Assembly: GCA_030704615.1 (NCBI GenBank)
Contig: CM060733.1
Coordinates: forward strand, 48,174,001-48,238,000
DNA: 64,000 bases
Reading direction: 5' to 3'
DNA from: Takakia lepidozioides
Taxonomy: Eukaryota > Plantae > Bryophyta
Made by a program: the position numbers and the translations under genes
Shown: one piece after another, positions 4,280 through 55,800 of the stretch
How the letters are laid out: every line of letters begins with the position of its first letter
How positions within the stretch are numbered: the stretch's first letter is position 1
Notes under the pieces: model-generated
The model's database searches: none
Told to the model about the DNA's origin: nothing
Seen by the model: only the letters and a program-made list of their open reading frames with translations

Positions 4280-7200
4280 ATGTTGGAGACGAAGCTAAGT
4301 TCTAGGACTGGTGTGAGTGATGGCAACGAAACCGAACAAGGTGCCGACAATAGGAAGTTCGCCATTGTGACGGAGAAGCTTTCAGTTGATGACATGCTGC
4401 AGAGATGGGTAGGCGAGTTCGGATGGGCTCAGTTGTGGCACTTTGTGCTCGTGAGTTTGGCATGGACAGTAGAGGCGCTGCACACTCTTGTTATGATTTT
4501 TGCCGATCGGGAGCCTTCCTGGCGGTGCCGGACTCCATCGTCCGTATCTTTATCTACTACCAGCCCAGGTAGATTCCCTCTCATTGCGCCAATTCAGCAG
4601 CTGGATCAGGTTGCAGCTGGGCTAGTTTTGTTTGTGCTTGAACTTGTGCAGTCTGCGACGCTTGTATGCAGATGTTCGAGCTAGTGAACTGCTTAAGAAA
4701 ATGATATCTAATCTAATAGTAAGCCAGAACTGATCGTGATCTTCGCAATGCACAACGAGATGGCCAACAAAATTCCGAGCTCTCGCGATTGATTACTCAA
4801 CGTCAGACCTACTGGCTTCCATGGGGTTTGCGAGTCTCCTATTGAAACAACCATGCAAAGAGTTCTCTCTTTCTTTGTAGGTGAAGGACCTCTGATCAAA
4901 ACGTGCATCAGTTCAAGTACTTAGAGGCAGGGCGTTCAAGTACTTAGGGAATTACAAGCAATGTTCAAAGATTGCTAGGTAAGTATATCCTCACAATTGT
5001 GCTGCACGTATTTGTACTCAAAACAACCTACCGCATCCCAAGGACGTCTGCACAGACAGTGTGGCGGGGTTGAGAGTGTGAGTTTCCAGTAATATCCAAC
5101 GTATTAGTGCCGAGTAGATTAGGTACTTCAAAACTACGTAGATCTCCTCAACATCGATCAAAGGCCCCTCAAAATTTGCTCGTGTCAGATGCACCGCCCG
5201 GCCTACTCCTGTCATGATTTTCAGGTCTAGTTGGCCAGCAGATTTTGCAGGCTTTCTGCAAATTTGGCCGTTTGAGATTGCTGTAATCTTCTCAGAAAGG
5301 TGACTAGCTTTAATCACTGCAATGACAGTGGGTTTTGGTGACTTGAACTAGGTGGCATGGGCCTCTCGTTGCATGAAGAATCTTTACAGTGTACACCAGC
5401 TTCCTCTCTCTGTGAAATGGATCCCAGCCTGTGGGAGTGGGTGGAAGGCGTGGGAGCATCGACTATATCGGAATGGGGCCTTATATGCGGAGATGAGTAC
5501 AAAGTTGGTCTAGCTCAAGCTATATTCTTTATTGGGGGACTTTGCGGTATTTCTTGCTCCATCTCTGTCCCCTCTCTGTGTGTCTCTCATATATATCAAG
5601 TGCTAGAGCTTCACTTTTTTGAACCTGCATGATACAAGCAGTTTTAGAGCAGTGTAGCTCTCTCTCCCTCTCACCCTCTGAGGTGCACGGTGGTTACTTA
5701 CTTCAAATTTATTTAATGCATCACAACCTTGGTCATCAGCTTACTCACCCCCATCGGCGATCCCTGCCTCTTCATGCGATATATCTGCCATGGTTGAGAT
5801 TTTAAGTGAGGATCATGACTGTGGTTCTCTTTCTGTCACTTTCGGTCAACTGCATTGCATCCATGCCCCAAATTTTCTTAGACTGGAGCATCATGGTTCA
5901 TATTTTCAATCTGTTCTTTAAGCTGTTTTCTTGTGACTCGTTGAGATTGGTTAAATTGCAGGGGCAGGTGTCTTTGGAAATCTTTCGGACTCTATCCTTG
6001 GAAGAAAGGGTGTTTTGCTTTTGGCTTGCACAATGACTGCGGTTGCTGGTTTATTGACATCACTTGCTCCAAACTACTGGATCTATGTGTTCATGCGGGG
6101 CCTCACCGGAGTAAGCTGTGGCGGGGTGGGTCTCTCATGTTTTGTATTAGCCACAGAGCCTGTTGGGCCTTCAAAGAGAGGCCAGGTGGGCATGTCAGCT
6201 TTCTACTTCTTCTCTTTCGGCATAATGACACTCCCAGCATTCGCATATTTCACCCCGTCTTGGAGAATCCTTTATGCAACAACGGCAATCCCTGCGATTT
6301 TGTACTGCCTTTTGGTATTACCGTTTGTTTGGGAATCGCCTCGCTGGTATCTGGTACAGGGGCGGCTCCAGGAAGCTATGGTTATTCTTCGAGCTTTTGC
6401 AAGAGGGAACGACAAATTTATACCTGAGAGTGTGTGGTTGGCTACTGAGGATGAAGAAGCTGAAGAGGCTGTAACAGGGTACTTATCTTCCTCATTAGAG
6501 AATCCCGAGCACCTAGAAAGGAATACAAATCCTGAATTTGGTGACATCAAGGAGGAAAAGGTTATGGACCTGGTACCTCCACATCCATCAGCAATGGCAG
6601 GTCAAAAGGCACCTGGTAACCTCTTTGATGTGTTTCGTTTCCCAGCGACGCGGTCGAGAATGCTTATCATGATTGTAGTGTGGTTCAATTGTGCTATAGT
6701 GTACTATGGAATCAACCTGAATGTGGTCAACCTGGGATTCAACCTCTATTTAAGTGTATTCTTCAACGGGTTGGTGGAGATGCCAGCATTTGCCATCACC
6801 GCACTGTTGCTGGGGAGATTGGGGAGGCGCTTCATGCTTGTCTCCGCCATGTTGCTTAGCGGGATAGCCTGCTTAATTGGAAGCTTCCTCTCTCTCACTC
6901 CATCTGAAAGCACTCCAGGCCTTTTGAATCTTTCCTCCCAGCAATATGGGTCTCTATCAGGCCTCTTGGATCTAAAATGGGGCAATGCATCTCAGACAGT
7001 ACCTGGTTTTCAGTCACTCCGATCATCGTTTTCTCTGCCTGGGATCCTCCCTCCACATACTGCATCTGCTGTTGGCATGGTTGGAACAAGTGCTGGACTA
7101 GTGAATGTGGTGGCTGCTCTCCGGGCCCTGTGCAGTGTGGTTGCAATCTTCGGGATGGCTGGAACATACAATCTCACTTACATCTACACATCGGAGCTCT

Positions 7201-7505
7201 TCCCAACTGTGGTGCGCAATGCAGCGCTGGGGCTTACCACTCAGAGTGCAGGAATCGGGTCCATCATCGCACCAGTGATTGTAGTACTGGGTCATCTCCA
7301 CCCTTCTCTCCCCTTTGCCGTCTTCGGGGTTGCTGCAGTGCTGGGGGGCCTCTTAGCAATCAAGCTGCCGGAAACCTTGAACCAACCTCTGTGGGAGACA
7401 CTGGAGGGCTTGGAAAGGGGTGAGAAGGCCCGAGAAGCTTCTCAGACAAATGCAAATGCTCTTTCAGATGTAGAATCCCAATCAACACAGGCAGAGGAAC
7501 CCTAA
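4280..7505 (+). CDS. Organic cation/carnitine transporter (MFS, plant OCT family); exons 4280-4568, 5352-5546, 5962-7505
   Basis: Motifs VDDMLQRWVGEFGWAQLWHF, STISEWGLICG, GNLSDSILGRK, ESPRWYL, ELFPTVVRNAALG, LPET. GT-AG introns join in frame (both phase 1). Confidence 0.92.
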
Positions 7506-8492: not shown

Positions 8493-10808
8493 CTAAGGTC
8501 TATCGCTCCTTGGGGTTGCCCATTCCACACGGAGAATCAGATTGTCATAACCATATCCGTCCAGCTTATTGATAGCTCGAATTGCATCATCCCTGCGCGG
8601 CGATTCCACCACAAACCAAACAATTATGTCAGCAATGGGAGGTGGCCACAGGCCCACACAACCATAATAATAGGTCCTGACACTCACATTCCACCACCAC
8701 CACCAAAGCCCAAAGTTGTCTATGAGAGCCAGCTTCAAGAATTAAAGAACCTCACAACAACAATGTTTTCTATGAATTTGCAATCAGTCAATGTGTTCAA
8801 ATATGAGCGCTGTTCTAGGAGTCCTAGGAAGTTGGTGGCGGGACACCTGCTTTATAAAAGATACTTGCTAACTAAAGTCGTTGAAGTTACAGGAAATGTC
8901 CAACAAAACAGAAACAAAACAGTAACAAAATGACAAAGGGAAGTTGGAACACACCGGTTGACAAAATTTATGAAGGCAAAACCACGACTGAGTCCTGTCT
9001 CACGATCAAATGCAACATAGATGCGAGAAATGGAACCGAAAGGGCGGAACAGCTCTTGAAGATCCTGTTCACGGGTATCCTCAGACAGATTTGTGACCCG
9101 GATGGAGTTGTCATCCCTACCCCTCCTCATACTCTCACCCTCATTTCCTTTAGCCCCTAGTCGCATACTGGGTGGCACATAAGATCCCTTTCCACCCGCA
9201 CCTCCGGCAGCACCACCTGGACCTCCCAGGTCATCATCACTTGGGGGCTTTTCGCCGCCAACTGCAAAACCCCTGTTAGCAGCCAGCTCCTTGAAGGGAC
9301 ACTTAGATGTCCAGTGATCTCCCTTCTTCCCACATGTTCTGCAGACAATGAGTGATGCATTGCCAAGGCTTGCAAGGTCAGCGCCCTTCTCGGGCTCTTG
9401 CTTGGCACCAGCTGGTCTCGTCCTCTCCAGAAAGATCTCCTCCGTAGAAACCACTGTGAGGTTTTCAGATGCATTCTGGCCAAGTGCATCACCAAACTTC
9501 TTGAGCTGACATCTGCGAATTGCTGCAGGGTTTAGTTTCTTTACCTGCAAATGAAAAATGAAGGGGATTAATGACAAATTGCAGTAGATTATTGGGCCTT
9601 TAGGTTGAAAGTGTCCATCTCAGGTTCACCTGTTTCATTCCAGCATTGGATGCATTTATCCAGGAATTCAGATAATAAATCCATAAGCCCTGTAGATGCA
9701 TTTAGCAACATTTTGAGATTTTGGTATTTATTATAAGATTGGTGGAAGATTTTGGAATGGATTTCTTTATGTTCAAAGGGAACAGCACATCTCTTGAGTG
9801 TATCAGACTAATCTCATCAATCCAAATCTCTCAATCATTATCAACAGTATACCCTCCTGTGGCAGAAAGCTGCCAGATCTGCTTATGTTAACATAACATA
9901 AGCTTGACCACTGTGCATGGGAATTGCGGTCACTTTTTAAGTTGCTTGAAACTGGTCATGTTCAACCTGTGATATTCACCATACTCCCAACGGCTTAGTG
10001 TGGAGTACTCACAGGGTCTCTGGCATGGCCATGATATGGCTGTGGCCCCATATAGGAAACCCATTTTAACGCACATATATGCCTCTCTCTCTGACACGAT
10101 CTATGCTTGTGCATACACTAAGATTGCTGCAGGCTCCTGAATTGCTGTGGAGGTATACATATCCTCTCAAATAGTGCCTGTGGTCCTGCTTGTCATACCT
10201 CGGAAAATAATATGAAGCTACACACCTAGAAACAACTTTGAACTACTTCGCCAAGTCAGAGCACCTCAGGAGCACTTCTAGACACCTTTCAACACTGACA
10301 ACCCCGATATCCAAAGAAAGTAATTAAGGCCGTCGTTCAGAAACATCCGGATAGGTGTAGTCGACTACCTCTAGTGACTCACTCATCACCTCACCGAGTG
10401 ATCTCTTTCCTGATTCCAACAATACCATATCTTCCGAAAATATCCCCTTATGTTCACAAAGCTTAAGGTCCAGTAATGCCAGTTAAAACTTGCGGTCTCA
10501 AGGACGAGCTCGTTCAAACATGCGAGGATACCAGTAAGTTGGCGTTGACAGGAGAGGATTGTATACAAAAACTGCACAAAAGAGAGTAAGAACGAGAAGC
10601 TATGATGCACATTACCACCCACCTGCTTCTTGATCCTCACAGTCTTGGTAACCTTAATTCGCACACCGTCGTCATTCTTTCTCCATTCGATAATGATCTT
10701 CACCCCCTTTTCATCAGGCCCGATCACCTGCATAGGCGGCAAGACGCCCTCGATCCCTTCGTCCTCCTCTGCAGCATCTCCCCACCTAAACTCCCTCCTG
10801 CCTCCCAT
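8493..10808 (-). CDS. eIF3g: Eukaryotic translation initiation factor 3 subunit G; exons 10808-10623, 9544-8955, 8592-8493
   Basis: N-terminal RWGD...LPP..IGPDEKGVK, zinc knuckle CRTCGKKGDHWTSKCP, YVPPSMR, RRM (IRVTNLSEDTRE...SRGFAFINF), C-terminal GYGYDNLILRVEWA. Splice sites are canonical. Confidence 0.95.
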
Positions 10809-21163: not shown

Positions 21164-24077
21164 ATGGCTGTGATGACTCATGCGAGCTTACACGAAGTTT
21201 TGGGCACAGCGCTAGTACTAGGCGTGATGGCAGGTGTGTTGTGTGGGGCAACACCACCATCACCTAAGTCTCCAGTCTTGCAGGAGCACGTAAAGTCAAA
21301 AATGGCGGATGATCACGACGTAGGCAAGAGCGGCCGGTTTGTGGACGTGGAGGTGTTGTTGGCATTCAAGAATGACATACTTGAGGATCCGAAAGGAGTT
21401 CTAACGGACTGGAGCGAAGTGACCAGAGGAGACATTTGTCACTCATGGTACGGCGTCACCTGTGATGAAGCCCACGCACACGTGGTAGAGCTGAATCTTG
21501 GAGGTATGGAGCTCCAAGGCAGCATCAGTCCATTGCTGGGCAATCTCTCCTTCTTGCAAATTCTCAACTTATCCTCCAATGCTTTTCACAGGTGCTGTCC
21601 TACAAACCTTGGAATTTGCAGTACAGATTTGTTATTCTAGATCTTATATAGTAATTCCCTCTCAGGTTGTTCACATTAGTATTCTTTGGCTCGGTGCAAC
21701 AGTTTACCACAGAGTTGGCAACACATGAATATTGGGAAGGCTTAGTGACAACAGTTGTTTCTTACTCTGTTTCAGTGGAGCTCAGAACCTGGCAGATCCT
21801 GACAATCTTGTACCTCCCATGATACAACCACCTCACAGGGCTCATTCCTGCTAGTTTGGGAGATTGCTCAGCTTTGATGGAGGTGGACTTGGATTCCAAT
21901 CACCTGAGTGGGAACATAATAATGGAGCTGGGGAGGTTGCAAAACCTAACGAGACTTTACCTTTCGAACAACAACCTTACTGGCACCATTCCTGCTAGTT
22001 TGGGAAATTGCTCATCTTTGGTGCAGCTGGACTTGGACTCCAATCAACTCACTGGAAACATACCAATGGAGCTAGGGAGGTTGCAAAAGTTAACACTTCT
22101 TGGCCTTTCGAACAACAACCTTACATGGAAATGCTAATGGAACTTTACCTTTCATACAATAGCCTCACAGGCACCATACCTGCTAGTTTGGGAAATTGCT
22201 CATCTTTGGTGGACCTAGAGTTGAACAAGAATCAGCTGACTGGGAATGTACCGTTTGAGCTAGGAAGGTTGCAAAACCTAATGTACCTTTTCCTTTGGAA
22301 CAACAACCTCACAGGCACCATACCTGCTAATTTGGGAAATTGCTCATCTCTGGTGGAGCTGGTGTTGAACAACAATCAGCTGAGTGGGAACGTGCCGGTG
22401 GAGCTAGGGAGGTTGAAAGCCCTACCAGTCGTTTATCTATACAAGAACAACCTCACAGGCACCATTCCAACTAGTGTGGGAGATTGCTCATCCTTGGTGG
22501 AGCTAAAGGTGAATGACAATCAGCTAAGTGGGAACGTACCGATGGAGTTAGGGAGCTTGAAAAACCTAACGATCCTTTACGTGCACAGGAATAGATTCAC
22601 AGGCACCATTCCAACTAGTGTGGGAGATTGTTCATCTTTGGTGGATTTGTCGCTGTCCTACAATCGGCTGAGTGGGACCATACCCATGGAGCTTGGGAGG
22701 TTGCAAAACCTAATGAAACTTTACCTTTCGAGCAACAACCTCATAGGCCCCATTCCTGCTACTTTGGGAAACTGCTCATCTTTGGTGGAACTGGGCTTGT
22801 ACTCCAATCAGCTGAGTGGGAATGTACCAATGGAGCTAGGGAGGTTGCAAAACTTATGGAAACTTTACCTTTGGAACAACTGCCTCACATTTGCCATTCC
22901 TGCTAGTTTGGGAGATTGCTCATCTTTGGTGGAGCTGGACTTGAGCAACAATCAGTTGAGTGGGAACCTACCGAGCGAACTTGGGAACTGTTCGGGCTTG
23001 CAGATAATAATGCTTGATAACAACTTAATCACAGGACAGTTCTCATTAGATTTGGCAAAACTTAACAACTCACTTCAGACTTTGTCGGTGAACAACAATC
23101 AATTTACAGGGCAGGTTCCAATCTCCTTGGGTACATGCACCCATCTTGTGCTGGTTGATTTCAGTGGAAACAAGTTCAGCGGGAGTATCCCAGCCTTTGA
23201 GATTGGTGATTTTCAGGAACTGCAGGTGGTAAGTCTCGCACACAACATACTTAGTGGCCCAATTCCAGATTGGGTCTGGAATCTTACTCGATTGCAGGTG
23301 TTGGATCTCTCACACAACTCCTTCATAGGTGGGCTCCCGAAAAAGCTTAGTCAATTGCAGGGCTCCAGTGTGAAGGCGAATGCATCGACTGGATACCAAG
23401 GATTAAATGGTCAAGATGTTGGTCCTTTCACTCTCTATGCGGAAGACCTCGAAATCACACTCAAGGGCAACACATTGACACCCACATATGTCTTATTGAC
23501 CACAACTTCTTTTGACGTCTCGGCAAATGTGCCTAGTGGTGAGATTCCAGCAGAGATTGGACAGCTAGGGGAGCTCCTCTACCTGAATTTGTCCCACAAT
23601 TCCTTTAGAGGCCCCATCCCAGGGAGCATGTCCAACATCAGCGCACTGGAGTCGTTAGACCTCTCCTATAATCTACTGAACGGTACAATTCCAAACAGCC
23701 TGGCAGGCTTGAGTGCCTTGGGCTTTCTTAATCTCTCCGATAACAACATCTCTGGGCAGATTCCAACAGAAGATCTCTTCAACTCAAAATTCCTAAACTC
23801 GTCATTTCTGGACAATCCCGCTTTATGTGGGTTTCCTCTCTCCAGAGAGTGCCCCTCACAAGAAATTAGTACCTCAACCCCACCAGGCCCAGCTATTGAC
23901 ACTGATGAAATCAGATTCACAGATTGGGTTGGAGAATTCCTATCAGTTCCTGACTTTCTCTTGGGCATGGCGATTGGGCTTGTCTCTGTAGTAACAACGG
24001 CCATTGCCTGGGCTCCGGCACACCATTTCATGCTGCAACCCACCATGGGGAACTATCATCTCAAGGATGGAGCATAA
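21164..24077 (+). pseudogene. LRR receptor-like protein 1 (signal peptide, LRRNT, LRRs, island, C3 LRRs, TM, short tail; no kinase), frame-disrupted at ~21590-21850 and ~22125
   Basis: LLAFKNDI..DP.GVL.DW...C.SWYGVTC cap, 24-aa plant LRRs (LTGTIPASLGNCSSLVELDLxxNQLSGNIPMELGRL), SFLDNPALCGFPL, GxxxG TM segment. Frameshifts relative to copy 2 could be real or assembly errors. Confidence 0.8.
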
Positions 24078-25482: not shown

Positions 25483-28400
25483 TCACCAGTAATCCCCACA
25501 AGAACAAATCCCATCTTCAAAGTGGTGAAAGCGGTTAGCATCACGTACAACAATTGCTCGGCCAACAATCTTTGAGATGAATTTGGTGGAGGTGTGGCAG
25601 TCACCACACACTCGAAGATTCTTGATGAGACGGAGAGGCGTCCTAGGGGTCGTGCTGATCAGCCCAAAACCAATGGCCAGCTTCTCACTGTGATGGCAAA
25701 GAGAAAATTCCTTGTCCTCCTCCCCCACATCATGCAATACAAAGCGCGTGTCAGGCACATACCCCGCCTCCTTCATCTGCCCAGACAATCTTCTCAGCTC
25801 AGCATGGATTTCCTTAATTTTGGGATGCAATTTGTCATCTACAACGAAGGTGTGCACCCTGTTGCCAACCTCAATGCAGCAGCGACCTGGCTCCTTTCTA
25901 ACCCCTCTGACCTTCATCATTCTTCTCACCTTTGCAGTATCATCCCACCTGCCAGCTGCAGCATAGATGTTTGATAGCAACACATACGTCGCGGAATCCA
26001 GTTCATCCCACTTGAGAATAGACGTTGCCGCCCGTTCAGCCATCTCCACATTGCCATGGATTCTGCAGGCACCAAGCAAGGCCTTCCATACCACAACATC
26101 TGGATTGATTGGCATTTTATTAATCAGGTCCATTGCCTCATCCAATTGCCCCGCACGTCCAAGAAGGTCCACCATGCAGCCAAAGTGCTCTACTGTCAGA
26201 GTGACACCATGATCATGAATCAGGGAATCAAAGTAGCGTCTTCCTTCATCCAGTAGGCCAGTGTGGCTGCATGCAGAGAGAACACATATAAAGGTGACAC
26301 TGTCCGGCTTCAAGCCTTTCTTTTGCATTCCTTCCAATAGTTGCAGGGCCTCCCTATGACAACCATGCTGGGCATATCCTGCTATCATCGCATTCCACGA
26401 CACCACATCTCGATCAGCCATATTGTCAAACACTTGCTTTGCAGCCTCGATGCACCCGCATTTGGCATACATGTCCACCAGGGCAGTGTTCAGAATGACA
26501 TCTGGTACAAGTCCAGCTTTGACAAGATCACCATGGACCTCTTTGCCCTTTTCCAGGGCTGCCAGGCTTGCACACGCATTGCAAACGCAAACAAACGTAA
26601 TGTGGTTGGGCTTCACCCCTTCCTGTATCATTTGCTCATAGGTCTCCAAAGCCTCCATCCCACGCCCTTGTTGTGCATATCCTGCGATCATCGCACTCCA
26701 TGACACCACATCTCGTTCAGACATATTGTCAAACACTCCCTTAGCATCCTCAATGCACCCACATTTGGCATACATGTCCACGAGAGTATTGTTTAGAATG
26801 ACATTTGGTACAATTCCAGCTTTGACAAAGTCACCATGGACCTCTTTGGCCTTTTCCAGAGCTGCCAGGCTTGCACACGCATTGCAAACGCCAACAAACG
26901 TGATGTGGTCGGGTTTCACCCCTTCGCCCATCATTTGCTCATAGGTATCCAAAGCCTCCATCCCGTGACCCTGCTGGGCATATCCTGAGATCATTGCGTT
27001 CCATGACACCACATCTCGTTCAGCCATCTTATCAAACACTGCCTTTGCATCCTCGATGGACCCACATTTGGCATACATGTCCACCAGGGTATTGTTCAGA
27101 ATCACATCTGGTACAATTCCAGCTTTGGCAATGTCACCATGCACCTCTTTGCCCTTTTCCAGGGCTGCCAGGCTTGCACAGGCATTGCAAACGCACACAA
27201 ACGTGATGTGGTTGCACTTCACCCCTTCCCCCATCATTTGCTCATAGGTCTCCAAGGCCTCCATCCCGCGCCCCTGCTGAGCATATCCGGCAAGCATCGC
27301 GGTCCATGACACCACATCTCGTTCAGCCATATTGTTGAACACTCCCTCCGCATCCTCAATGCTCCCACATTTTGCATACATGTCCACCAGGGCAGAGTTC
27401 AGAATGACATTGGGTACAATTCCAGCTTTCACAATGTCACCATGGACCTCTTTGCCCTTTTCCAGAGCTGCCAGGCTTGCACAGGCACTGCAAACGCACA
27501 CAAACGTGGTGTGGTTGCACTTCACCCCTTCCCCCATCATTTGCTCATAGGTCTCCAAAGCCTCCATCCCGCACCCCTGCTGTGCATACCCTGCAAGCAT
27601 CGCGTTCCACGACACCACATCTCGTTCAGCCATAGTGTTGAACACTACTTTCGCATCCTCAATGCTCCCACATTTGGCATACATGTCCACCAGGGCAGAG
27701 TTCAGAATGACATTGGGTACAATTCCAGCTTTGACAATGTCACCATGGACCTCTTTGCCCTTTTCCAGAGCTGCCAGGCTTGCACATGCATTGCAAATGC
27801 ACACGAACGTGATCTGGTTGGGCTTCACCCCTTCCCCCATCATTTGATCATAGATCTCCAAAGCCTCCACCCCACGTCGCTGCTGTGCATACCCTGCAAG
27901 CATCGCGTTCCACGACACCACATCTCGTTCAGCCATAGTGTTGAAAACTCCCTTCGCATCCTTAATGCACCCACATTTGGCATACATGTCCACCAGGGCA
28001 GTGTTCAGAATGACATTGGGTACAATTCCAGCTTTGATGATGTCACCATGGACCTCTTTCCCCTTTTCCAGGGCTCCCAGGCTTGCACACGCATTGCAAA
28101 CACCAACAAAGGTGATGTGGTTGGGCTTCACTCCTTCGCGCAGCATTTGCTCATAGGTCTCCAAAGCATTCCTACCACACCCATGCTTGGTAAATCCTGC
28201 CAACATTATATTCCACGTAATCAAAGATCGTTGAGACATTCCGTTGAACACTTGGTGAGCATTCATGATGCTCCCGCACTTAACATACATTTTGACAAGT
28301 GTGTTTAGGAGAAAAACACTTGGCGTGAATCCACTTTGGATAATGTGAGTGTGCACCTGCTTTCCAGCTTCCAGACCTTTCATCTTGATGCACGTAAGCA

Positions 28401-28710
28401 AGAGACAGACATACGTATCTGAATCTGCTGAAATGCCTACTTGGTTTAAAGTCTGTAGAGCCTCTTTCAGTCTGCCTGCCTCACAAAGCATCTTCACATG
28501 CCCAGAAGTGCCAGCAGAGGCATTGTGGACTCCCTCTCTTGATCCTCTTTCAGAAGCTGTGGTCATGGTTGAGGTGCCTGATTTTATCAACTGTGCCACT
28601 GCAGCAGCTGCCTTTAGTTGACCATCTACCCATGCAGGTTTCTTGTAGCTATTGATCCACAGGGAATCATAGGTAATCTTGTGCTTGAAATCTGGCCCTC
28701 TTGGATGAAT
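25483..28710 (-). CDS. Main exon of PLS-class PPR-E1-E2-DYW editing factor 2; it begins with the second half of a PDF motif
   Basis: Seven P-L-S triplets of 101 aa, E1/E2, KEPGRCCIEV, HSEKLA, CGDCH, CSCGDYW*. An acceptor AG at 28712-28711 precedes IHPRGPDFKHK. Confidence 0.95.
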   Translation of the reverse strand: MHPRGPDFKHKITYDSLWINSYKKPAWVDGQLKAAAAVAQLIKSGTSTMTTASERGSREGVHNASAGTSGHVKMLCEAGRLKEALQTLNQVGISADSDTYVCLLLTCIKMKGLEAGKQVHTHIIQSGFTPSVFLLNTLVKMYVKCGSIMNAHQVFNGMSQRSLITWNIMLAGFTKHGCGRNALETYEQMLREGVKPNHITFVGVCNACASLGALEKGKEVHGDIIKAGIVPNVILNTALVDMYAKCGCIKDAKGVFNTMAERDVVSWNAMLAGYAQQRRGVEALEIYDQMMGEGVKPNQITFVCICNACASLAALEKGKEVHGDIVKAGIVPNVILNSALVDMYAKCGSIEDAKVVFNTMAERDVVSWNAMLAGYAQQGCGMEALETYEQMMGEGVKCNHTTFVCVCSACASLAALEKGKEVHGDIVKAGIVPNVILNSALVDMYAKCGSIEDAEGVFNNMAERDVVSWTAMLAGYAQQGRGMEALETYEQMMGEGVKCNHITFVCVCNACASLAALEKGKEVHGDIAKAGIVPDVILNNTLVDMYAKCGSIEDAKAVFDKMAERDVVSWNAMISGYAQQGHGMEALDTYEQMMGEGVKPDHITFVGVCNACASLAALEKAKEVHGDFVKAGIVPNVILNNTLVDMYAKCGCIEDAKGVFDNMSERDVVSWSAMIAGYAQQGRGMEALETYEQMIQEGVKPNHITFVCVCNACASLAALEKGKEVHGDLVKAGLVPDVILNTALVDMYAKCGCIEAAKQVFDNMADRDVVSWNAMIAGYAQHGCHREALQLLEGMQKKGLKPDSVTFICVLSACSHTGLLDEGRRYFDSLIHDHGVTLTVEHFGCMVDLLGRAGQLDEAMDLINKMPINPDVVVWKALLGACRIHGNVEMAERAATSILKWDELDSATYVLLSNIYAAAGRWDDTAKVRRMMKVRGVRKEPGRCCIEVGNRVHTFVVDDKLHPKIKEIHAELRRLSGQMKEAGYVPDTRFVLHDVGEEDKEFSLCHHSEKLAIGFGLISTTPRTPLRLIKNLRVCGDCHTSTKFISKIVGRAIVVRDANRFHHFEDGICSCGDYW

Positions 28711-30660
28711 CTGGACCCACACTCTATCCCTGCTCCTTCAGCTATCACTGCCTCTGCACAAATCATGCATACATCCTTGCCTTGCTGCTAGCAGCTGACA
28801 ATGACAGCCTAGATTTGTTCTAGGAAACACCCAACTCAACTTATCACACTAGTTCGTATGCTCAATTGCATCTGCTACTCTCTGTAATCCAACAGACATT
28901 CACCTTTTTGCCTCGATTGTCCCACCATTGACTGGGGTCAGAAAAGTATTCATTCCACAGCTTCTCCTCGTCTGTGTTACCTGTTTCTGGATACTTTCCT
29001 GTTGTCACATTGGCAGTATCATGTCAAAGTTACTCCAAACTATCAAAGATTCAAACAACCAGCTAACTTGCAGAATTCAACATGGAATTTTAGGGCCGAT
29101 TCTGATAAGAGGGAAAAACAGGGTGAAATGTGTTGAAGAAGGTGCCTTCATTAGCAATGCCTGATTTTATCAATTGTGCCGCTGCTGCTGCGGCTTCCAG
29201 TTGACCATCTACCCATGCAGGTTTCTTGTAGCTATCTGTCCACAGGGAATCATAGGTAATCTTGAGCTTGAAATCCGGCCTTCTTGGATGAATCTGGACC
29301 CAAACTCTATCCCTGCTCCTTCAGCTATCCATGCTCTGCACAAGTCATTTATACATCCTTGCCTTGCTGCTAGCAGCTGACAATGATAGCCTAGATTTGT
29401 TCTAGCAAACACCCCAACCCTATTTATCACACTAGTTCCTATGCTGACTTGTGTTTCCAACAGGCATTCACCTTTTTGCCTCGATTGTTCCACCCTTGAC
29501 TGCGGTCGGAAACATATTCATTCCAGAGCTTCTCCTTGTCTCTGTTATCTGTTTTTCGATAACACATTGGCAGTAACATGTCAAAATCACTCCAAAACCA
29601 CCATAGGCAGAATTCAACCTGAAATTTTAGGGACGACTCTGATAAGAGGGAAAAACAGGCTGAAATGTGTTGAAGAAAGTGCCTTCATTGGCAGTGCCTG
29701 GTTCTATCAATTGTGCTGCTGCCGCTGCTGTTTCCAGTTGACCATCTACCCACGCAGGTTTCTTGTAGCTATTGATCCACAGGGAATCAGAAGTAATCTT
29801 GTGGTTGAAATCTGGCCCTCTTGGATGAATCTGGACCTCTATCCCTGGTCCTTCAGCTATCCCTGCCTGTGTAAAAATCATGAATACATCCTCAGCCTTG
29901 CTGCTAGCAGCTGACACTGACGATGTGAAGTTCTTCCAGCAAACACCCCAACCCTAGTTCCAATTCTGAATTGCATCTGCTTCTCTCTGTAATCCAACAG
30001 GCATTCACCTTTTTGTCTCCATTGTCCCACCATTGACTGGGGTCGGAAAAGTGTTCATACCAAAGCTTCTCCTCATCTCTGTTATCTGTTTTTGGGTACT
30101 TTCCTGCTGCCACATCGGCAGTAACTTGTCAAAGTCACTCCAAACCACCACAGATCCACCCAACGAGCTAACTTACAGAATTTAATATGCAAATTCAGGG
30201 CCGAGTCTGATGAGAGGGCAAAACAGGCTGAAATAGGTCAAAGAAGAAGGTGCCCTCACCACATTGTCCTTGACCTTGTGTCATGACCCATGGAGGATTT
30301 GACCGACCATCAACCCAAAAGGACCGTGTGCTGCTTGTGTCTGTAGTCAGGTAATGTCGAATTGGTCTGTGAGAACCACCACGGTGCAGCTGAGCAGGCA
30401 TAGATTGAAACACGGCCTGCTAAGACCAAGCTGACTCTCCCAAGAACCTTGTAAACATCAGGAAGAATACAAAATCATGGTACTAACAGGAAGAGCCAAG
30501 AGCCCACATCTGCAGGATGGACAAACTTCTTCACATCGTACATTAAGAAAAAGCCTCACCTTGCGACTGCGGTTGTCCCACCATCGTGAAGGATCTTTAA
30601 AAAACTCATGCCAGCTCTGCTCCGTGCTCCAAGGTAGAGGTTTGTGCTCGAAAATCCGAC
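28711..30660 (-). CDS. Upstream exons of PPR-DYW gene 2, encoding (with the start of the main exon) four tandem OSB-type PDF motifs; exons ~30660-30560, 30366-~30256, 30103-30009, 29830-29683, ~29548-29472, 29293-29146, 28998-28904
   Basis: Spliced reads: WHEFFKDPSRWWDNRSRK|TNSTLPDYRHK(fs)..SFWVDGRSNPPWV; LWYEHFSDPSQWWDNGDKK|IHPRGPDFNHKITSDSLWINSYKKPAWV; LWNEYVSDRSQGWNNRGKK|IHPRRPDFKLK...; LWNEYFSDPSQWWDNRGKK|IHPRGPDFKHKITYDSLWINSYKKPAWV. Each motif is split by a phase-0 GT-AG intron at the same position. The three downstream units are ~540-580-bp genomic tandem duplicates. Confidence 0.8.
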
Positions 30661-31004
30661 AGCATCAACATTTTGACAAGGTCCTTTACTGAGGGGTGCT
30701 AGTGAGCTTTCAACAACATTCATGCAAGTCGTTTTGGGCTCCATTGGGCTCTGCACGATGAGGAATATACGAACATGTCCAAACTTACACAGATGCTAAC
30801 CCAGCGTTTGCAGTCTGGAGATTGTAGAGTGGTCTCTAAAAACGATCAGGAGGGAGGCGCTGAGCAGCCAGAGTCTTTCACCCTGGGTCTTGGAATGAAT
30901 TTGACAATTTCATCATAAACCTAATTTAAGGCTGTGACATGGCAATTGGTGCCATGATTTAAGGGGGAATGAATGGAAAGGTGTCAAGGAACCCCTCCCT
31001 CCCG

Positions 31005-34312: not shown

Positions 34313-37300
34313 ATGGCTGTGATGACTCATGCGAGCTTACACGAGGTTTTGGGCACAGCGCTAGTACTAGGCGTACTGATGGCAGGTGTGTTGTGTGGGG
34401 CAACACCACCATCACCTAAGTCTCCAGTCTTGCAGGGGCACGTAAAGTCGAAAATGGCTGATGATCACGACGTAGGCGAGAGCGGTCGGGTTGTGGACGT
34501 GGAGGTGTTGTTGGCATTTAAGAATGGCATACTTAAAGATCCGAAAGGAGTTCTAACGAATTGGAGCGCAGCGGCAGAAAGAGACATTTGTCACTCATGG
34601 AACGGGCGTCACCTGTGATGAGCACATGCACACGTGGTAGAGCTGAATCTTGGAGGCATGGAGCTCCAAGGCACCATCAGTCCTTTGCTTGGCAATCTCT
34701 CCTTCTTGCAAGTTCTCAACTTGTCCCACAATGCTTTCACAGGTGCTGTCCCTACAAACTTGAGTTGTTTCTTACTCGATGATCTTTTCTGATCCAGTAT
34801 GAGGATAAAAGATGCAAGTTAGCTGCATATTTGCACCAGGAACTCGTTGACTTTTAGGCATACCCTTGAGCAATAGATGTTTGTGAGTTGCTTGTGGAGG
34901 CTCTCTCTTTCTTGTTTCATGATTTCTCTTGTCTCATAGTTTTGCAAGCGTTGCAAGCTTTCCGCTGACGCTATAAACTATCATTTCATCTCTATTCCCC
35001 TAGAGCTAAGAACTTTACAGAGCCTGAGATTTTCTTACCTCCCAATATACAACAACCTCACAGGCGTCATTCCTGCTAGTTTGGGAGATTGCTCATATTT
35101 GACGGAGCTCGACTTGGGCACCAATCAACTGAGTGGCAACATACCTGTGGAGCTAGGGATGTTGCAAACTCTAACACTCCTTTACCTTTGGAACAACATA
35201 GGCACCGTTCCTGCTAGTTTGGGAAACTGCTCATCTTTGGTGGAGGTGGTGTTGTCCGACAATCAGTTGAGTGGGAACATACCCATGGAGCTAGGGAGGT
35301 TGCAAAACCTAATGGTCCTTGCCCTATGGGAAAACAACCTCACAGGCACCATTCCAGCTAGTCTGGGAAACTGCTCATCTCTGGTTTCACTGGACTTGGA
35401 CACCAATCAACTCAGTGGGAACATACCGATGGAACTAGGGAGGTTGCAAAACCTAACGTTCCAGCTAGTCTGGGAAACTGCTCATCGTTGATGGAGCTAG
35501 TCTTGGACTCCAATCACCTGAGTGGGAGCATACCGATGGAACTAGGGAGGTTGCAAAACCTGACAATGCTTTACTTACGGAAGAACAACCTCACAGGCAC
35601 CGTTCCTACTAGTTTGGGAGACTGCTCACTTTTGAGGAAGTTGGCACTGTCCTCCAGTCAGCTCACTGGAAACATACCGATGGAGCTAGGGAGATTGCAA
35701 AAACTAACAATTCTTCACCTGTGGAACAACAGCCTCAATGGCACAATTCCAGCTAGTTTGGGAAATTGCTCATCTTTGGTGCAGCTGGACTTGAGCAACA
35801 ATCAGTTGAGTGGGAACATACTGATGGAGCTAGGGAGGTTACAAAAGCTAATACTCCTTAACCTTTACAAAAACAGACTCACAGGCACCATTCCAGCTAG
35901 TTTGGGAGATTGCTCATCTTTGGTGGTGCTACCATTGAACAACAACCAGCTGAGTGGGAACATACCAGTGGAGCTAGGGCGGCTGCAAAACCTAACGGTA
36001 CTGTACCTATTGAACAATAGGCTTACAGGCATCATTCCTGCTAGTTTGGGAAATTGCTCATCTTTGGTGGAGTTGGACTTGAATAACAACAAGCTAACTG
36101 GGAATATACCGATGGAGTTGGGGCAGTAGCAAAACCTAACAAAACTTTACCTTCAAAGCAACAGGATCACAGGCACCATTCCTGCTAGTTTAGGAAATTG
36201 TTCCTCTCTTGTAGAACTAATGTTGGAATCCAATCAGCTCGGCGGGAACATACCCAGCGAACTTGAGAACTGTTCGGGTTTGCAGAAACTAAAACTTGGT
36301 AACAACTTAATTACAGGACAGTTCTCATTAGATTTGGCAAAGTTCAGCAACTCTCTTCAGACTTTGTCAGTTAACGCCAATCGATTTACAGGACAGGTTC
36401 CCATTTCCTTGGCTAACTGTACCCATCTTGTGATGATTGATGTCAGTGGAAACCAATTCAATGGGAGTATCCCAGTTTTTCAGGGTAGTGATTTTCAGGA
36501 ACTACGGGTGCTCAGTTTGGGACACAACACACTTAGTGGCCCAATTCCAGATTGGGTTTGGAATCTGACTCAATTGTAGGTGTTGGATCTCTCCCACAAC
36601 TACTTCACAGGTGAGCTCCCACAAAGATTAAGTCAGTTGCTGGGCTTCAATGTTAAGGCGAATGCATCAACGGGACTCAGTCGATTCAATGGAAGTCTTG
36701 GTCCTTCCACTCTTTTTGCTGAGGATCTCCAAATCACAGTCAAGGGCAACACATTGATACTCGAGTATATCTTACTGACCACAACTTCTGTTGATGTCTC
36801 GGTAAATGCGCTCAGTGGCGAGATTCCAATAGAGATTGGACAACTAGAGCAGCTCCTCTACCTGAATTTGTCCCACAATTCCTTCACAGGCCCCATTCCA
36901 GGGAGCATGTCCAATAATAGCGCATTGGAGTCACTGGAGCTCTCGTACAATGCACTAAGCGGTACAATTCCAGACAACCTAGTAGGCTTGAGCGCCTTGG
37001 GGTTCCTTAATCTCTCCCACAACAACCTCTCTGGACAGATTCCAACAAATGGTGGCTTCAGCACAAAATTCCTAAACTCGACGTTCCTCGACAATCCAGC
37101 TCTATGTGGGTTTCCTCTCTCCAAGCAATGCCTCTCACTAGGAACTATCAGCTCGACCCCAACTGGCCCAGCTAGCGATACTGTTGAAACCAGATCCAGA
37201 GACTGGATTGGAGAGATTCTGTTGATTCCCAGCTTTGTCTTGGGCACGACAATAGGGTTTGTCTCTGTAGTAACAACGGTCATTGTCTGGGCTCCAGCGC

Positions 37301-37371
37301 GCCATTTGATATTGCCACCCACCATGGTGAAGTACAATCACGAGTATGGAGCATTTTCCTCTCGATCGTGA
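34313..37371 (+). pseudogene. LRR receptor-like protein 2, pseudogene paralogue of RLP1
   Basis: The 5' region is near-identical to 20930-21620. Lesions: frameshift ~34604, non-LRR segment ~34765-34990, deletion ~35460, and in-frame stops TAG 36127-36129 (from TTG) and TAG 36577-36579 (from CAG). Confidence 0.88.
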
Positions 37372-52868: not shown

Positions 52869-55800
52869 TTAGAGTTCAGTACGCGATCGTCCTTGGGATT
52901 GGCCTCATCATGGGGTCGGGCAAGCCGAAGCGAAAGCGGAACGGCCCAAAAGATGATGATCCTGGTGAGCCCGATGGGGGCGACGTGTTACCGAGGCGGC
53001 CGTTTGAGGAAGCGATGCATGTTTCCGAAAACGAGGCCGCTCAAGAGCGGGAGGATCCGAGGAGTCGGAGCCCGAGGAATCCTTGAGAGCTCCGACAAAC
53101 CAAGAGATGCCTCCTATGCCGGCAGCCTTTTGGGAAGGGTTGTTGGCAGCAGTTTGGCGGGACATTGAAAGACGTGTTGAAGGCGGCTAATGCCACTTCC
53201 ACTAAGGCAAAGTTTAAGGTGAAGCCTAAGGAACCCGGCACCTTCGAGGGCGTCCGAAATCGGAAGGCACTCAACACCTGGCTCCTGGAGCTAGAGCAGT
53301 ACTTCCGGGCGGCCAAGTTGAGTGACGAGGATCGGGTGGAAGTGGCTCCCACCTATTTGAGGGGCTATGCTCAACAATGGTGGCAGAAACGCCTTCACGA
53401 CCGAGGTCCAAGCCCGGAAACCTTGAACTGGAGTGGGTTCAAGGAATTGATGAAGAGACAGTTTGTGCCCCTCAACGCGTCCTGGCTTGCCCGGGACAAG
53501 ATGAGGAATTTGAAGCAAACAGATGACATTCGGGGGTATGTCCAGGCTTTCAATGTGCTGTTGCTCGAAGTCGCGGACATGGCAGAACCAGAAATGGTCT
53601 TTAACTTTGTGGCGGGACTCCCCCATGGGCCAGGCGGAAGTTGGAGGAGAAGCCACCCAAGACTTTGAACGAGCAATTGAGAGGGCTGAATGTTTCTCGG
53701 ATGTCCCTAGGGGTGAGAGACAAGGCCGTATGGAGCTGAACCACAAGAAGACCCGGCGGGAAGGTGACTCCTTCCGACCGGAAAAGAAGTGGGATAGGCC
53801 ACGCGGCGACAATGGCACGTGGAAATCGAAGGGAGGGCCTTCACACGTCAAGGCGGCACCCAGTGCTTCGAAAAGAAAAGCGGGTGGAGCGGCTTATGGC
53901 GGACAGAAGGCGACCTTTGATGGAGTGTGTTTCAATTGCGGGGAGCCCGGGCACATGGCCAAGAAGTGCACGAAACCTCGACAATTGAACATGACTCGGG
54001 CAACCACGGAGCTGTCGGAAGATACCATCAGTCACTTGGTGGAAGCGGTGGTCGCCAGAACTTGCAAGGTAGGCAACTATTTTTGTGAGTTGTATCAGGA
54101 AACTGGCGCCCTGCGTAAAGGGAGTCAGTTATTGTTCGTGGATGGGATAATATCCGGAACTAACGTGTCGTTGTTGGTGGACATAGGAGCGTCGCACTCC
54201 TTCATGACGCCGGCGGCGGCGAAAGTTGGGACTCCCGACAAGTGACGTGGGGACCTCTATTGAGGTGCGTTCTGCCAAAGGAGAACCACAGTTGGCGACA
54301 GGTTGGCGTTTGATGTTCCTCTTCAACTGGGGAGTTGGGAGGGACGTGAGAACTTCACCATCTGCGAGATCGATGGAGTGGATCTCATTTTGGGGATGAC
54401 CTTTTTGAGCAAATCCGGAGCGGTCATAGATGGCCGCAAGAGAGTAGTCACGCTGCCATGTGGGAATGGTGGCGAGGTCTTACGAGTGTCGGAAACGCCC
54501 AAATCCGTGGGAGGGCGAATAAACCTTCTGTCAGCAAGGGAGTGGGCCGTGGAGGAGGCACACGAGCCCCAGTTTTTGCTTTACATTAGAGAAGTGAAGG
54601 AGAAAGCGATGGGGAGCCGAGCCCAGATTGGATCAAGGGGATTTTGAAGAATACCAGGATGTGATGCCGGAGGATTTACCAAGCGGCTTGCCACCGCGAA
54701 GAGGAGTTGACCACAAGATTGAGGTGATACCGGGATCGGAACCGCCTGCCAAGGCACCCTACTGGTTGAGCCACAGGGAGTTGGTCGAGCTGAAGACTCA
54801 GCTCAAGGATCTAATGTCAAAGGGGTACATCCGGCCGAGTAAGTCACCTTACGGAGCCCCGGTGCTATTCGCAGACAGGACGCTGCGGATGTGTGTCGAT
54901 TACAGGGCTTTGAATAAGGTGACTATTAAAACCGGTACCCTTTGCCAAGGATCGACGACCTTTCGACCGGTTGGCAGGAGCGAAGTATTTCAGCCGGATC
55001 GACTTACGCTCCGGCTATCATCAAATTCGGGTGGCGGAAGGAGATGAGGAGAAGACCGCGTGCAGGACAAGGTATGGTTCATATGAGTTCTTGGTGATGC
55101 CTTTTGGGCTCACCAATGCACCTGCGACCTTTAGCACGCTGATGAACAGCCTTTTTCAGGAGTGGTTGGATGATTTTGTGATCGTGTACATCGACGACAT
55201 CTTGGTGTACTCGAAAAAAAGAGGAGCACCTGGAGCACCTCAAAAGGGTGTTCCAAAATTGCGGAAAGGAAGCTGTATGCCAAAGCTTCAAAGTGCGAAT
55301 TCGGGGTCACGAAAGTGGAGTTCTTGGGGCATGTGATTACACAGGATGGGATCAAAATAGATGACAGAAAGGTGAGGGCAATTTTGGACTGGGAGCCTCC
55401 GACTTCGGTCCCGGGAGTGCGATCCTTCCTAGGACTCGCCTCCTATTACCGGAAGTATGTGAGAAATTTCGCCAAAATCGCGGTCCGTTGTCAGACCTTC
55501 TGTGTAAATCTAAAAAAGTCTGGGCATGGAACACCTTTGTGGCCAAGCTTTTGCTGAATTGAAGCAGCGGATGGCGGAAGCTCCAGTCTTGAAAATCCCG
55601 GAGTTCGATCGTCCGTTCGAGATTCATACAGATGCGTCGGACTTCGCGATTGGGGGTGTACTGATGCAAGATGGACGTCCAGTGGCTTACGAAAGTAAGA
55701 AACTGAATGAAGTGGAGCGACGGTGGCCGACGCACGAGAAAGAGATGAAGGCGGTGGTGCACTGTCTTGAGCTTGGCGCCACTATGTTGTTCCAATCCAG

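Follow-up and report, generated by a model that had tools for sequence, protein, structure and literature searches.

The subject of this analysis is a 64,000-nucleotide stretch of DNA from the bryophyte Takakia lepidozioides (GenBank assembly GCA_030704615.1, contig CM060733.1, positions 48,174,001 to 48,238,000 of the forward strand), referred to below as the window. The locus of interest lies on the minus strand and combines two elements: a long exon encoding a PPR-DYW protein of the type known from RNA editing, and, upstream of it, four tandem modules resembling the PDF motif of the organellar OSB proteins, which bind single-stranded DNA (ssDNA). An earlier interpretation made from the letters alone, here called the sequence-only reading, described the locus as one editing factor carrying all four modules. 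The evidence presented below points to a simpler product. The locus probably encodes a PPR-DYW editor with one functional OSB-type PDF, supplied by the module that adjoins the PPR exon, and this editor would belong to an old, apparently undescribed subfamily.

All coordinates are positions within the 64-kb window, and the modules are numbered from unit 1 (most upstream) to unit 4 (adjoining the PPR exon). Each unit measures about 540 bp and consists of a WWDNR half-exon (a), with the consensus W..(F/Y)F.DP..WWDNR..K, and a PDFKHK half-exon (b), with the consensus ..P..PDF.HK....(L/F)W.....P.WV. In units 1 to 4, respectively, exon a ends at 30560, 30009, 29472 and 28904, exon b starts at 30366, 29830, 29293 and 28710, and the introns between them are 193, 178, 178 and 193 bp long; every one is GT-AG and phase 0. 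All eight half-modules and four introns listed in the sequence-only reading were found where it had placed them. Its claim that the last unit is in frame with the PPR exon also agrees with the present map, in which unit 4 exon b is continuous with an open reading frame (ORF) of 1075 codons (28710-25486; open frame overall 25483-28722). The features are listed below; a caret marks an exon-intron junction and bit values are profile scores.

25483-28710, minus strand: terminal exon, comprising the PDF second half (28710-28609), a linker of about 40 amino acids, the PPR array, E1, E2 and DYW; stop codon at 25483-25485.
26366-28167, minus strand: tandem array of six near-identical P-L-S triplets (Tandem Repeats Finder: period 303 bp, 89% match).
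28711-28903, minus strand: unit 4 intron, 193 bp, phase 0, within the PDF domain; AAG^gtgaat ... gggtccag^ATT.
28904-28998, minus strand: unit 4 exon a (..EEKLWNEYFSDPSQWWDNRGKK), the sole intact first half; phase-1 acceptor acag^GA AAG; no in-frame ATG.
29090-29293, minus strand: unit 3 exon b (PDFKLK..SLWTDSYKKPAWV), 29.4 bits; no donor; stop after ..SYQNRP.
29294-29471, minus strand: unit 3 intron, 178 bp, GT-AG, phase 0.
29472-29579, minus strand: unit 3 exon a, degenerate (WNEYVSDRSQGWNNRGKK), 21.5 bits; ORF 29439-29579.
29627-29830, minus strand: unit 2 exon b (PDFNHK..SLWINSYKKPAWV), 35.0 bits; no donor, runs to a stop.
29831-30008, minus strand: unit 2 intron, 178 bp, GT-AG, phase 0.
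30009-30103, minus strand: unit 2 exon a (WYEHFSDPSQWWDNGDKK), 30.8 bits; NAGNAG phase-1 acceptor gcagcag^GA AAG.
30260-30401, minus strand: candidate first coding exon (..SFWVDGRSNPPWVMTQGQGQC), from ATG 30401 to the phase-1 donor GTG^GTGAGG; profile positions 36-53, 17.6 bits.
30367-30559, minus strand: unit 1 intron as delimited by the sequence-only reading, 193 bp, GT-AG; ATG 30401 lies inside it.
30560-30640, minus strand: unit 1 exon a (SWHEFFKDPSRWWDNRSRK), 33.9 bits; motif intact; no in-frame ATG and no productive reading into unit 1 exon b.

The terminal exon matches the Pfam models PPR_2 (1.5e-123, in 17 stretches), E_motif (2.9e-19), Eplus (7e-06) and DYW_deaminase (1.1e-42). Its PPR array has an S-L-S-like start, six P-L-S triplets and then P2-L2-S2, with seven P-L-S triplets in the motif table. 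The catalytic and terminal signatures are present, namely KEPG (PG box), HHSEKLA (HSE), CGDCH and a terminal CGDYW. Judged by this domain content, the gene is a nuclear PLS-class, PG-type PPR-DYW factor with a predicted function in organellar C-to-U RNA editing. No exon of the locus has a Pfam match to an SSB domain, and PPR, E and DYW come after the PDF; consequently, the locus is not an OSB gene. The residues at position 5 and the last position are NN, NN, NN, TN, ND and SN in the P motifs of the triplets and TD, SD, SD, ND, ND and TD in the S motifs. Since the copies are 89% identical while these specificity residues differ among them, a recent internal amplification followed by change at the RNA-code positions is suggested. 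On the opposite strand, an ATG-initiated ORF of 288 amino acids (27442-28308, plus strand) runs antisense to the triplet array; in all likelihood it is no gene and arises from the repetition of the codon pattern.

The identity of the upstream modules was assessed with a profile, A1, derived from an alignment of 18 PPR-attached PDF modules and searched against 1.84 billion representative proteins. Each exon of the locus was searched separately, and no joined, spliced protein was used as a query. A1 matches 1204 proteins at E<=1e-3 and 533 at E<=1e-10. Its best 150 matches include 65 proteins of OSB architecture, in which 1-13 PDF repeats form the C-terminal part behind an OB/SSB-like domain, 11 PPR proteins and 74 others or fragments. 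The OB-fold group can be identified as OSBs from its Pfam SSB matches and from the source name 'protein OSB2, chloroplastic-like', an Asparagus officinalis protein of that name being matched at 2e-40. In the opposite direction, a hidden Markov model built from 30 PDF modules of OB-containing proteins only scores 32.1 bits on unit 4 exon a, 42.7 bits on unit 4 exon b and 41.2 bits on unit 2 exon b. With A1, unit 4 reaches 38.5 bits in exon a (profile positions 2-22) and 37.9 bits in exon b (23-56). Exon a (profile 1-22) and exon b (23-56) thus add up to exactly one PDF domain. Unit 4 reads LWNEYFSDPSQWWDNRGKK in exon a and IHPRGPDFKHKITYDSLWINSYKKPAWV in exon b, and 11 of the 11 columns invariant in A1 are kept.

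The PDF profile was also run against 2984 six-frame fragments covering the window. Only the eight pieces of the units match, with domain E-values of 3e-11 to 8e-4, and the next candidate has E>3; the matches are therefore far beyond chance. Other searches did not pick up the modules: no Pfam model matches the PDF half-modules, and word-indexed protein searches with the N-terminal 80 or 45 residues returned 0 matches, which is a limit of the word filter. Three unspliced protein versions of the gene, looked up for exact identity, had no counterpart in the protein collection. A full-length protein search, in turn, showed the same motif ahead of the PPRs in about 35 of the 120 closest PPR proteins, and in none of the Cryptomeria, Ginkgo and angiosperm PPR proteins among those 120. 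On these two-way profile matches the modules are homologous to the OSB PDF motif, and the assignment made in the sequence-only reading is borne out.

The four copies differ in their state of preservation. In unit 1, a 2-nt deletion places PDYRHKQH and SFWVDGRSNPPWV of exon b in two separate frames, and the frame produced by splicing meets a stop behind ..HTVLLG; the exon ends in a good phase-1 donor, GTG^GTGAGG, with its last base at 30260. In units 2 and 3, the position aligned to this donor reads AATGAAGG, the GT is gone, and a stop follows about 22 codons on. Unit 3 has moreover lost three invariant residues (F>V, W>G and D>N), carries P>R and H>L as well, and reaches 21.5 bits where unit 4 reaches 38.5. 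Its usual acceptor is lost through an 11-nt deletion, which also puts ATG 29579 in frame. This ATG, in the degenerate unit 3, is the only in-frame one found in any exon a. The ATGs at 30671 and 30665, beside the start at 30660 adopted in the sequence-only reading, were considered as start codons and rejected, since neither shares the reading frame of unit 1 exon a.

Lineage-specific codon changes follow the same division. Counted over the whole unit, the ratio of synonymous to non-synonymous changes is 4/1 in unit 4, 1/9 in unit 3 and 3/7 in unit 2; in exon a alone, the respective values are 1/0, 0/5 and 1/3. Unit 4 (4/1) differs from units 2 and 3 taken together (4/16) with a one-sided Fisher p of ~0.02. 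Among units 2-4, exon identity is 83-90% and intron identity 84-90%. As read from these counts, the substitutions show purifying selection in unit 4 only and a neutral pattern in units 2 and 3. The description of four modules therefore survives in part: their positions, their introns and the fusion to the PPR exon stand, while the frame of unit 1 exon b, the integrity of unit 3, the donors of units 2 and 3 and the start codon do not. The claim of a translated four-copy array is not supported, three of the four units being frameshifted, degenerate or dead-ended, with neutral evolution.

Comparison with other plants places unit 4 in a conserved gene structure. Annotated proteins were mapped back onto their own loci in Sphagnum (L001), Asparagus (L002), Calypogeia (L003) and Diphasiastrum (L004). 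A phase-0 intron occurs at the same position, after ..WWD(N/H)RxxK, in Sphagnum jensenii P0079, Calypogeia fissa P0093 and Diphasiastrum complanatum P0284. In the Asparagus OSB2-like gene, 2/3 PDFs are split directly after WWDxRxxK; the third contains an insertion, and its split lies five residues further on, behind this insertion. The shared intron position shows that the PDF passed from one of the two families, OSB and PPR, to the other as a pair of exons. Bryophyte PDF-PPR genes consist of a presequence exon, PDF exon a, and then PDF exon b together with PPR-DYW, with a phase-1 intron before exon a. The layout of the Takakia locus (b half and PPR in one exon, a small a exon, phase 0 between them and phase 1 upstream) is identical to that of L001, L003 and L004. 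The fusion of PDF to a PG-type PLS-DYW factor, as previously claimed, is thereby upheld; PDF-PPR genes annotated in other land plants have this gene structure too. Diphasiastrum has a phase-1 inter-module intron that splits a Gly codon before Lys (..TSG^KVV..EQLW), and both phase and context agree with the acceptors in the window (cag^GA AAG). The terminal exon is colinear with Diphasiastrum P0045 through the PDF half, the linker and the first PPRs (E 6e-25). At the unit 2 acceptor, read-through into the upstream bases (30104-30110) gives VAAGK, as at the start of Sphagnum exon 2, VAAGKKEKRW (L001 3115-3140); in the Takakia lineage, this acceptor seems to have shifted by a few codons in the 3' direction.

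The sequence-only reading had regarded the architecture as unusual, but fusions with 1-3 copies are common in non-seed plants. In the protein collection searched, 50 PPR proteins carry 1-3 N-terminal PDFs each; P0054 and P0135 have three. PDF-PPR proteins are annotated in Diphasiastrum (dozens), six Sphagnum species, Calypogeia fissa and Adiantum capillus-veneris, and three PPR/DYW clusters of the ESM Atlas (57-127 members) match the PDF model with template modelling (TM) scores of 0.82-0.90. In a tree of the domain, 29/32 PPR-attached PDFs fall into one weakly supported cluster, and 2 changes are needed vs 27 in shuffles; given this clustering, the tree is compatible with one old fusion. A full-text literature search found no paper describing a PDF-PPR fusion, and a 2026 paper on OSB evolution never mentions PPR. 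A Trp-rich N-terminal extension of hornwort PPR proteins named 'CURE', mentioned in the sequence-only reading as a possible counterpart, did not appear in a full-text search of the open-access literature. Taken together, the annotated proteins suggest that the PPR editing factors of non-seed plants commonly include a PDF-PPR variant, which seems not to have been described. Two further observations concern relatives. P0121 (Kingdonia uniflora KAF6142360.1, 1160 aa) has 13 PDF repeats and a weak SSB match; P0121-P0125 range from 9 to 13 repeats, far above the 1-5 PDFs discussed in the OSB literature. P0068 (Diphasiastrum O6H91_16G079700, 1362 aa) has PDFs at 141-198 and 679-736 with PPRs after each; its gene model probably joins two PDF-PPR genes that lie in tandem.

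The favoured gene model can be described as follows. The PDF module consists of two half-exons separated by an ancient phase-0 intron, with its second half fused to the PPR exon, and this two-exon unit has been duplicated in tandem at the Takakia locus. We infer that the productive mRNA most likely uses unit 4 alone, with 28998-28904 spliced to 28710. The upstream partner of unit 4 would be a phase-1 donor, the most plausible candidate being that at 30260, which ends a short ATG-initiated leader with a half PDF. The ORF beginning at ATG 30401 encodes a short leader, basic and Ser/Thr-rich, followed by ..SFWVDGRSNPPWVMTQGQGQC, and continues to this phase-1 donor. A half PDF followed by a full PDF is found in many Diphasiastrum members, e.g. 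P0006, P0008, P0041 and P0071; by analogy, exon 30401-30260 with its half PDF, followed by the full PDF and PPR-DYW, would reproduce their layout. Units 2 and 3 would then be dead-end, neutrally decaying copies within an enlarged intron, and unit 1 an older module whose second half is frameshifted. The predicted protein is likely to contain one full PDF, perhaps with a half-PDF leader before it.

The contribution of the PDF to such a protein can be approached through its fold and its relatives. AlphaFold, applied to a 99-sequence alignment, predicts a small helix / beta-hairpin / helix fold with a predicted local distance difference test (pLDDT) value of 84. No solved relative of this model was found: the best Foldseek match in the PDB has an E-value of 1.5, VIA-align over 48,161 chains gives a best Z of 2.7, and a PDF profile search of PDB sequences returned 0 matches. 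In the ESM Atlas, two clusters of hypothetical proteins from tailed phages (Uroviricota; 187 and 199 aa) match the PDF fold with TM scores of 0.66-0.75 over 58-59 residues; plant PPR and SSB clusters also match it, and a phage Rad52/Rad22 cluster reaches TM 0.47. Going by these models, the PDF fold could be linked to phage proteins that handle ssDNA.

The nearly invariant residues of the PDF are aromatic and basic (W, F, R, K, H), and fit base stacking and phosphate contacts. As cited in two later papers (PMC6963530, PMC4166229), the PDF of OSB1 is reported to be necessary and sufficient for ssDNA binding (Zaegel 2006). In the proposed mechanism, the target C would be deaminated by the DYW domain, and the PPR array would recognise the RNA upstream of it. 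The PDF would serve as a sequence-independent single-strand grip on the 5' side of the PPR footprint, which could raise the affinity or hold the site unfolded, and it might keep the factor at nucleoid-associated nascent transcripts. The best-supported reading of the PDF is an accessory single-strand grip, possibly also a nucleoid tether. An extension of this idea, which we regard as unlikely, is that the PDF is a working single-strand clamp on bryophyte, lycophyte and fern editors, where it either couples editing to the nucleoid or substitutes for seed-plant helpers. If this were true, coupling to the nucleoid could proceed via nascent RNA, a transcription bubble or the ssDNA of R-loops. The locus would then show PDF copy number evolving by tandem duplication of a two-exon unit, and the upstream copies would possibly be alternative first-half exons and not junk.

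Some observations weigh against an editor with a single functional, nucleic-acid-binding PDF. Unit 4 exon a is not preceded by an in-frame ATG, and the candidate first exon 30401-30260, with its short leader, is a best guess. The splicing proposed must skip the acceptors of exon b in both unit 2 and unit 3, which are intact. The selection test rests on 25 codon changes, and gene conversion could blur it. OSB1 and OSB2, furthermore, were reported to prefer ssDNA over RNA (PMC4166229); consequently, an RNA-binding role of the PDF is not a given.

Alternative accounts of the gene itself differ in which parts of the locus reach the mRNA. The sequence-only reading, in which four modules are spliced in frame into a four-PDF PPR-DYW protein, draws on the canonical, phase-0 introns between all a and b halves and on PPR proteins with three PDFs (P0054, P0135). 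After ..WVD, each unit also offers a possible phase-1 GT (GAT G^GTCAAC), from which splicing to the next phase-1 acceptor is conceivable. However, position +3 of this donor is a pyrimidine and the site differs from the conserved junction, whose donor is deleted in units 2 and 3. A frameshift brings unit 1 exon b to a stop, unit 3 has lost its acceptor as well as three invariant residues, units 2 and 3 together appear neutral (16 non-synonymous vs 4 synonymous changes), and there is no in-frame start; such a protein is thus extremely improbable. At the other extreme, the PDF exons may all lie outside the mRNA as the remains of a former N-terminus, with translation starting at an internal Met at 28566 (MTTASERG..) or 28491. 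The lack of an in-frame ATG upstream of unit 4 exon a, the internal Met codons preceding the first PPR and the visible decay of three of the four units would agree with this. Yet unit 4 has all 11 invariant residues over both halves, both splice sites and mostly synonymous changes. No stop interrupts the frame after the acceptor at 28710, translation from 28566 would yield a protein lacking a presequence, and the structure is that of expressed-looking annotated genes in four other plant lineages, which makes the loss of the PDF from the mRNA unlikely. It is still less likely that the whole locus is an unexpressed or recently dead member of a large PDF-PPR family. The messy 5' region and the recently amplified PPR triplets would be in line with such a fate, but the 3.2-kb ORF has no stop, the E1/E2/DYW catalytic signatures are complete, and RNA-code residues differ among otherwise near-identical triplets.

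A different type of alternative accepts the same gene and disputes only the ligand: the PDF would not bind nucleic acid but would serve in oligomerisation, in docking to nucleoid or editosome partners, or in import and sorting. In its favour, non-seed plants are not known to possess some of the helper proteins of seed-plant editosomes. By prediction, moreover, the PDF folds into a small helix-hairpin-helix unit, for which no relative binding nucleic acid was found among solved structures, and AtOSB2 is a tetramer (PMC6963530). Against this, the sole experimental function reported for the PDF is ssDNA binding by OSB1 and OSB2 (PMC6963530, PMC4166229), and its nearly invariant aromatic and basic residues are as expected for base stacking and phosphate contacts. 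A PDF that does not bind nucleic acid is rather unlikely, and the editor with one functional PDF from unit 4, acting as an accessory grip on single strands, is preferred.

The favoured model is of interest for several reasons. The usual description of PPR-DYW editors names two parts, a PPR tract and a deaminase; the PDF-PPR proteins add a third, conserved domain predicted to bind nucleic acid. This domain would be borrowed from organellar DNA-maintenance proteins; it occurs on editors in mosses, liverworts, lycophytes and ferns, and this is apparently unreported. A PDF on editors would alter models of target capture by PPR-DYW enzymes, and the fusion bears on the engineering of PPR-based base editors. 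It also provides a directly testable hypothesis on the role of the PDF in editing and on its binding to single-stranded RNA vs ssDNA. The Takakia locus catches the tandem duplication of an exon pair at a stage where only the copy adjoining the PPR exon is still intact.

The surroundings of the locus contain further coding sequence. A second PLS-PPR/E/E+/DYW gene lies at 23-2230 on the plus strand (DYW_deaminase 2.7e-44); it is truncated by the window start, and its N-terminus, with any PDF module it may carry, lies outside. Neighbouring ORFs at 6015-7505 (plus), 8852-9577 (minus), 22008-24077 (plus), 36580-37371 (plus) and 53523-54245 (plus) have matches comprising a sugar/MFS transporter, eIF3g with RRM, two LRR proteins and a zf-CCHC (gag-like) protein. 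The window is a gene-dense plant nuclear region.

Among known systems, the OSB proteins share with the Takakia locus the same PDF of ~55 aa (W..FF.DP..WWDNR..K....PDFKHK....LW.....P.WV) and the same intron position, and in both families tandem copies arise by duplication of the two-exon unit. In the OSBs, however, the PDFs lie C-terminal to an OB/SSB-like fold and the proteins act in organellar DNA recombination, whereas the Takakia locus has no OB fold and its PDF is N-terminal to PPR-DYW. The PLS-class PPR-DYW:PG editors represented by Physcomitrium PPR56 and PPR65 are like the Takakia protein in their PLS triplets, P2-L2-S2, E1, E2 and PG box, as well as in the HxE and CxDCH zinc ligands and the terminal DYW. 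These editors are described as presequence, PPR, E and DYW, and none of the papers searched speaks of an OSB-type PDF in front of the PPRs. The closest counterparts are the annotated PDF-PPR genes (Diphasiastrum O6H91_01G051500 and O6H91_23G029000, and those of Sphagnum, Calypogeia and Adiantum), which have the same domain order, both intron phases and a common linker into the first PPR, ..C(E/Q)EGRLKEAL... Best identity to them is 55-58%. The Takakia locus differs in its two additional dead-end tandem copies, and it lacks an intron that Diphasiastrum L004 has in addition, after its last PDF.

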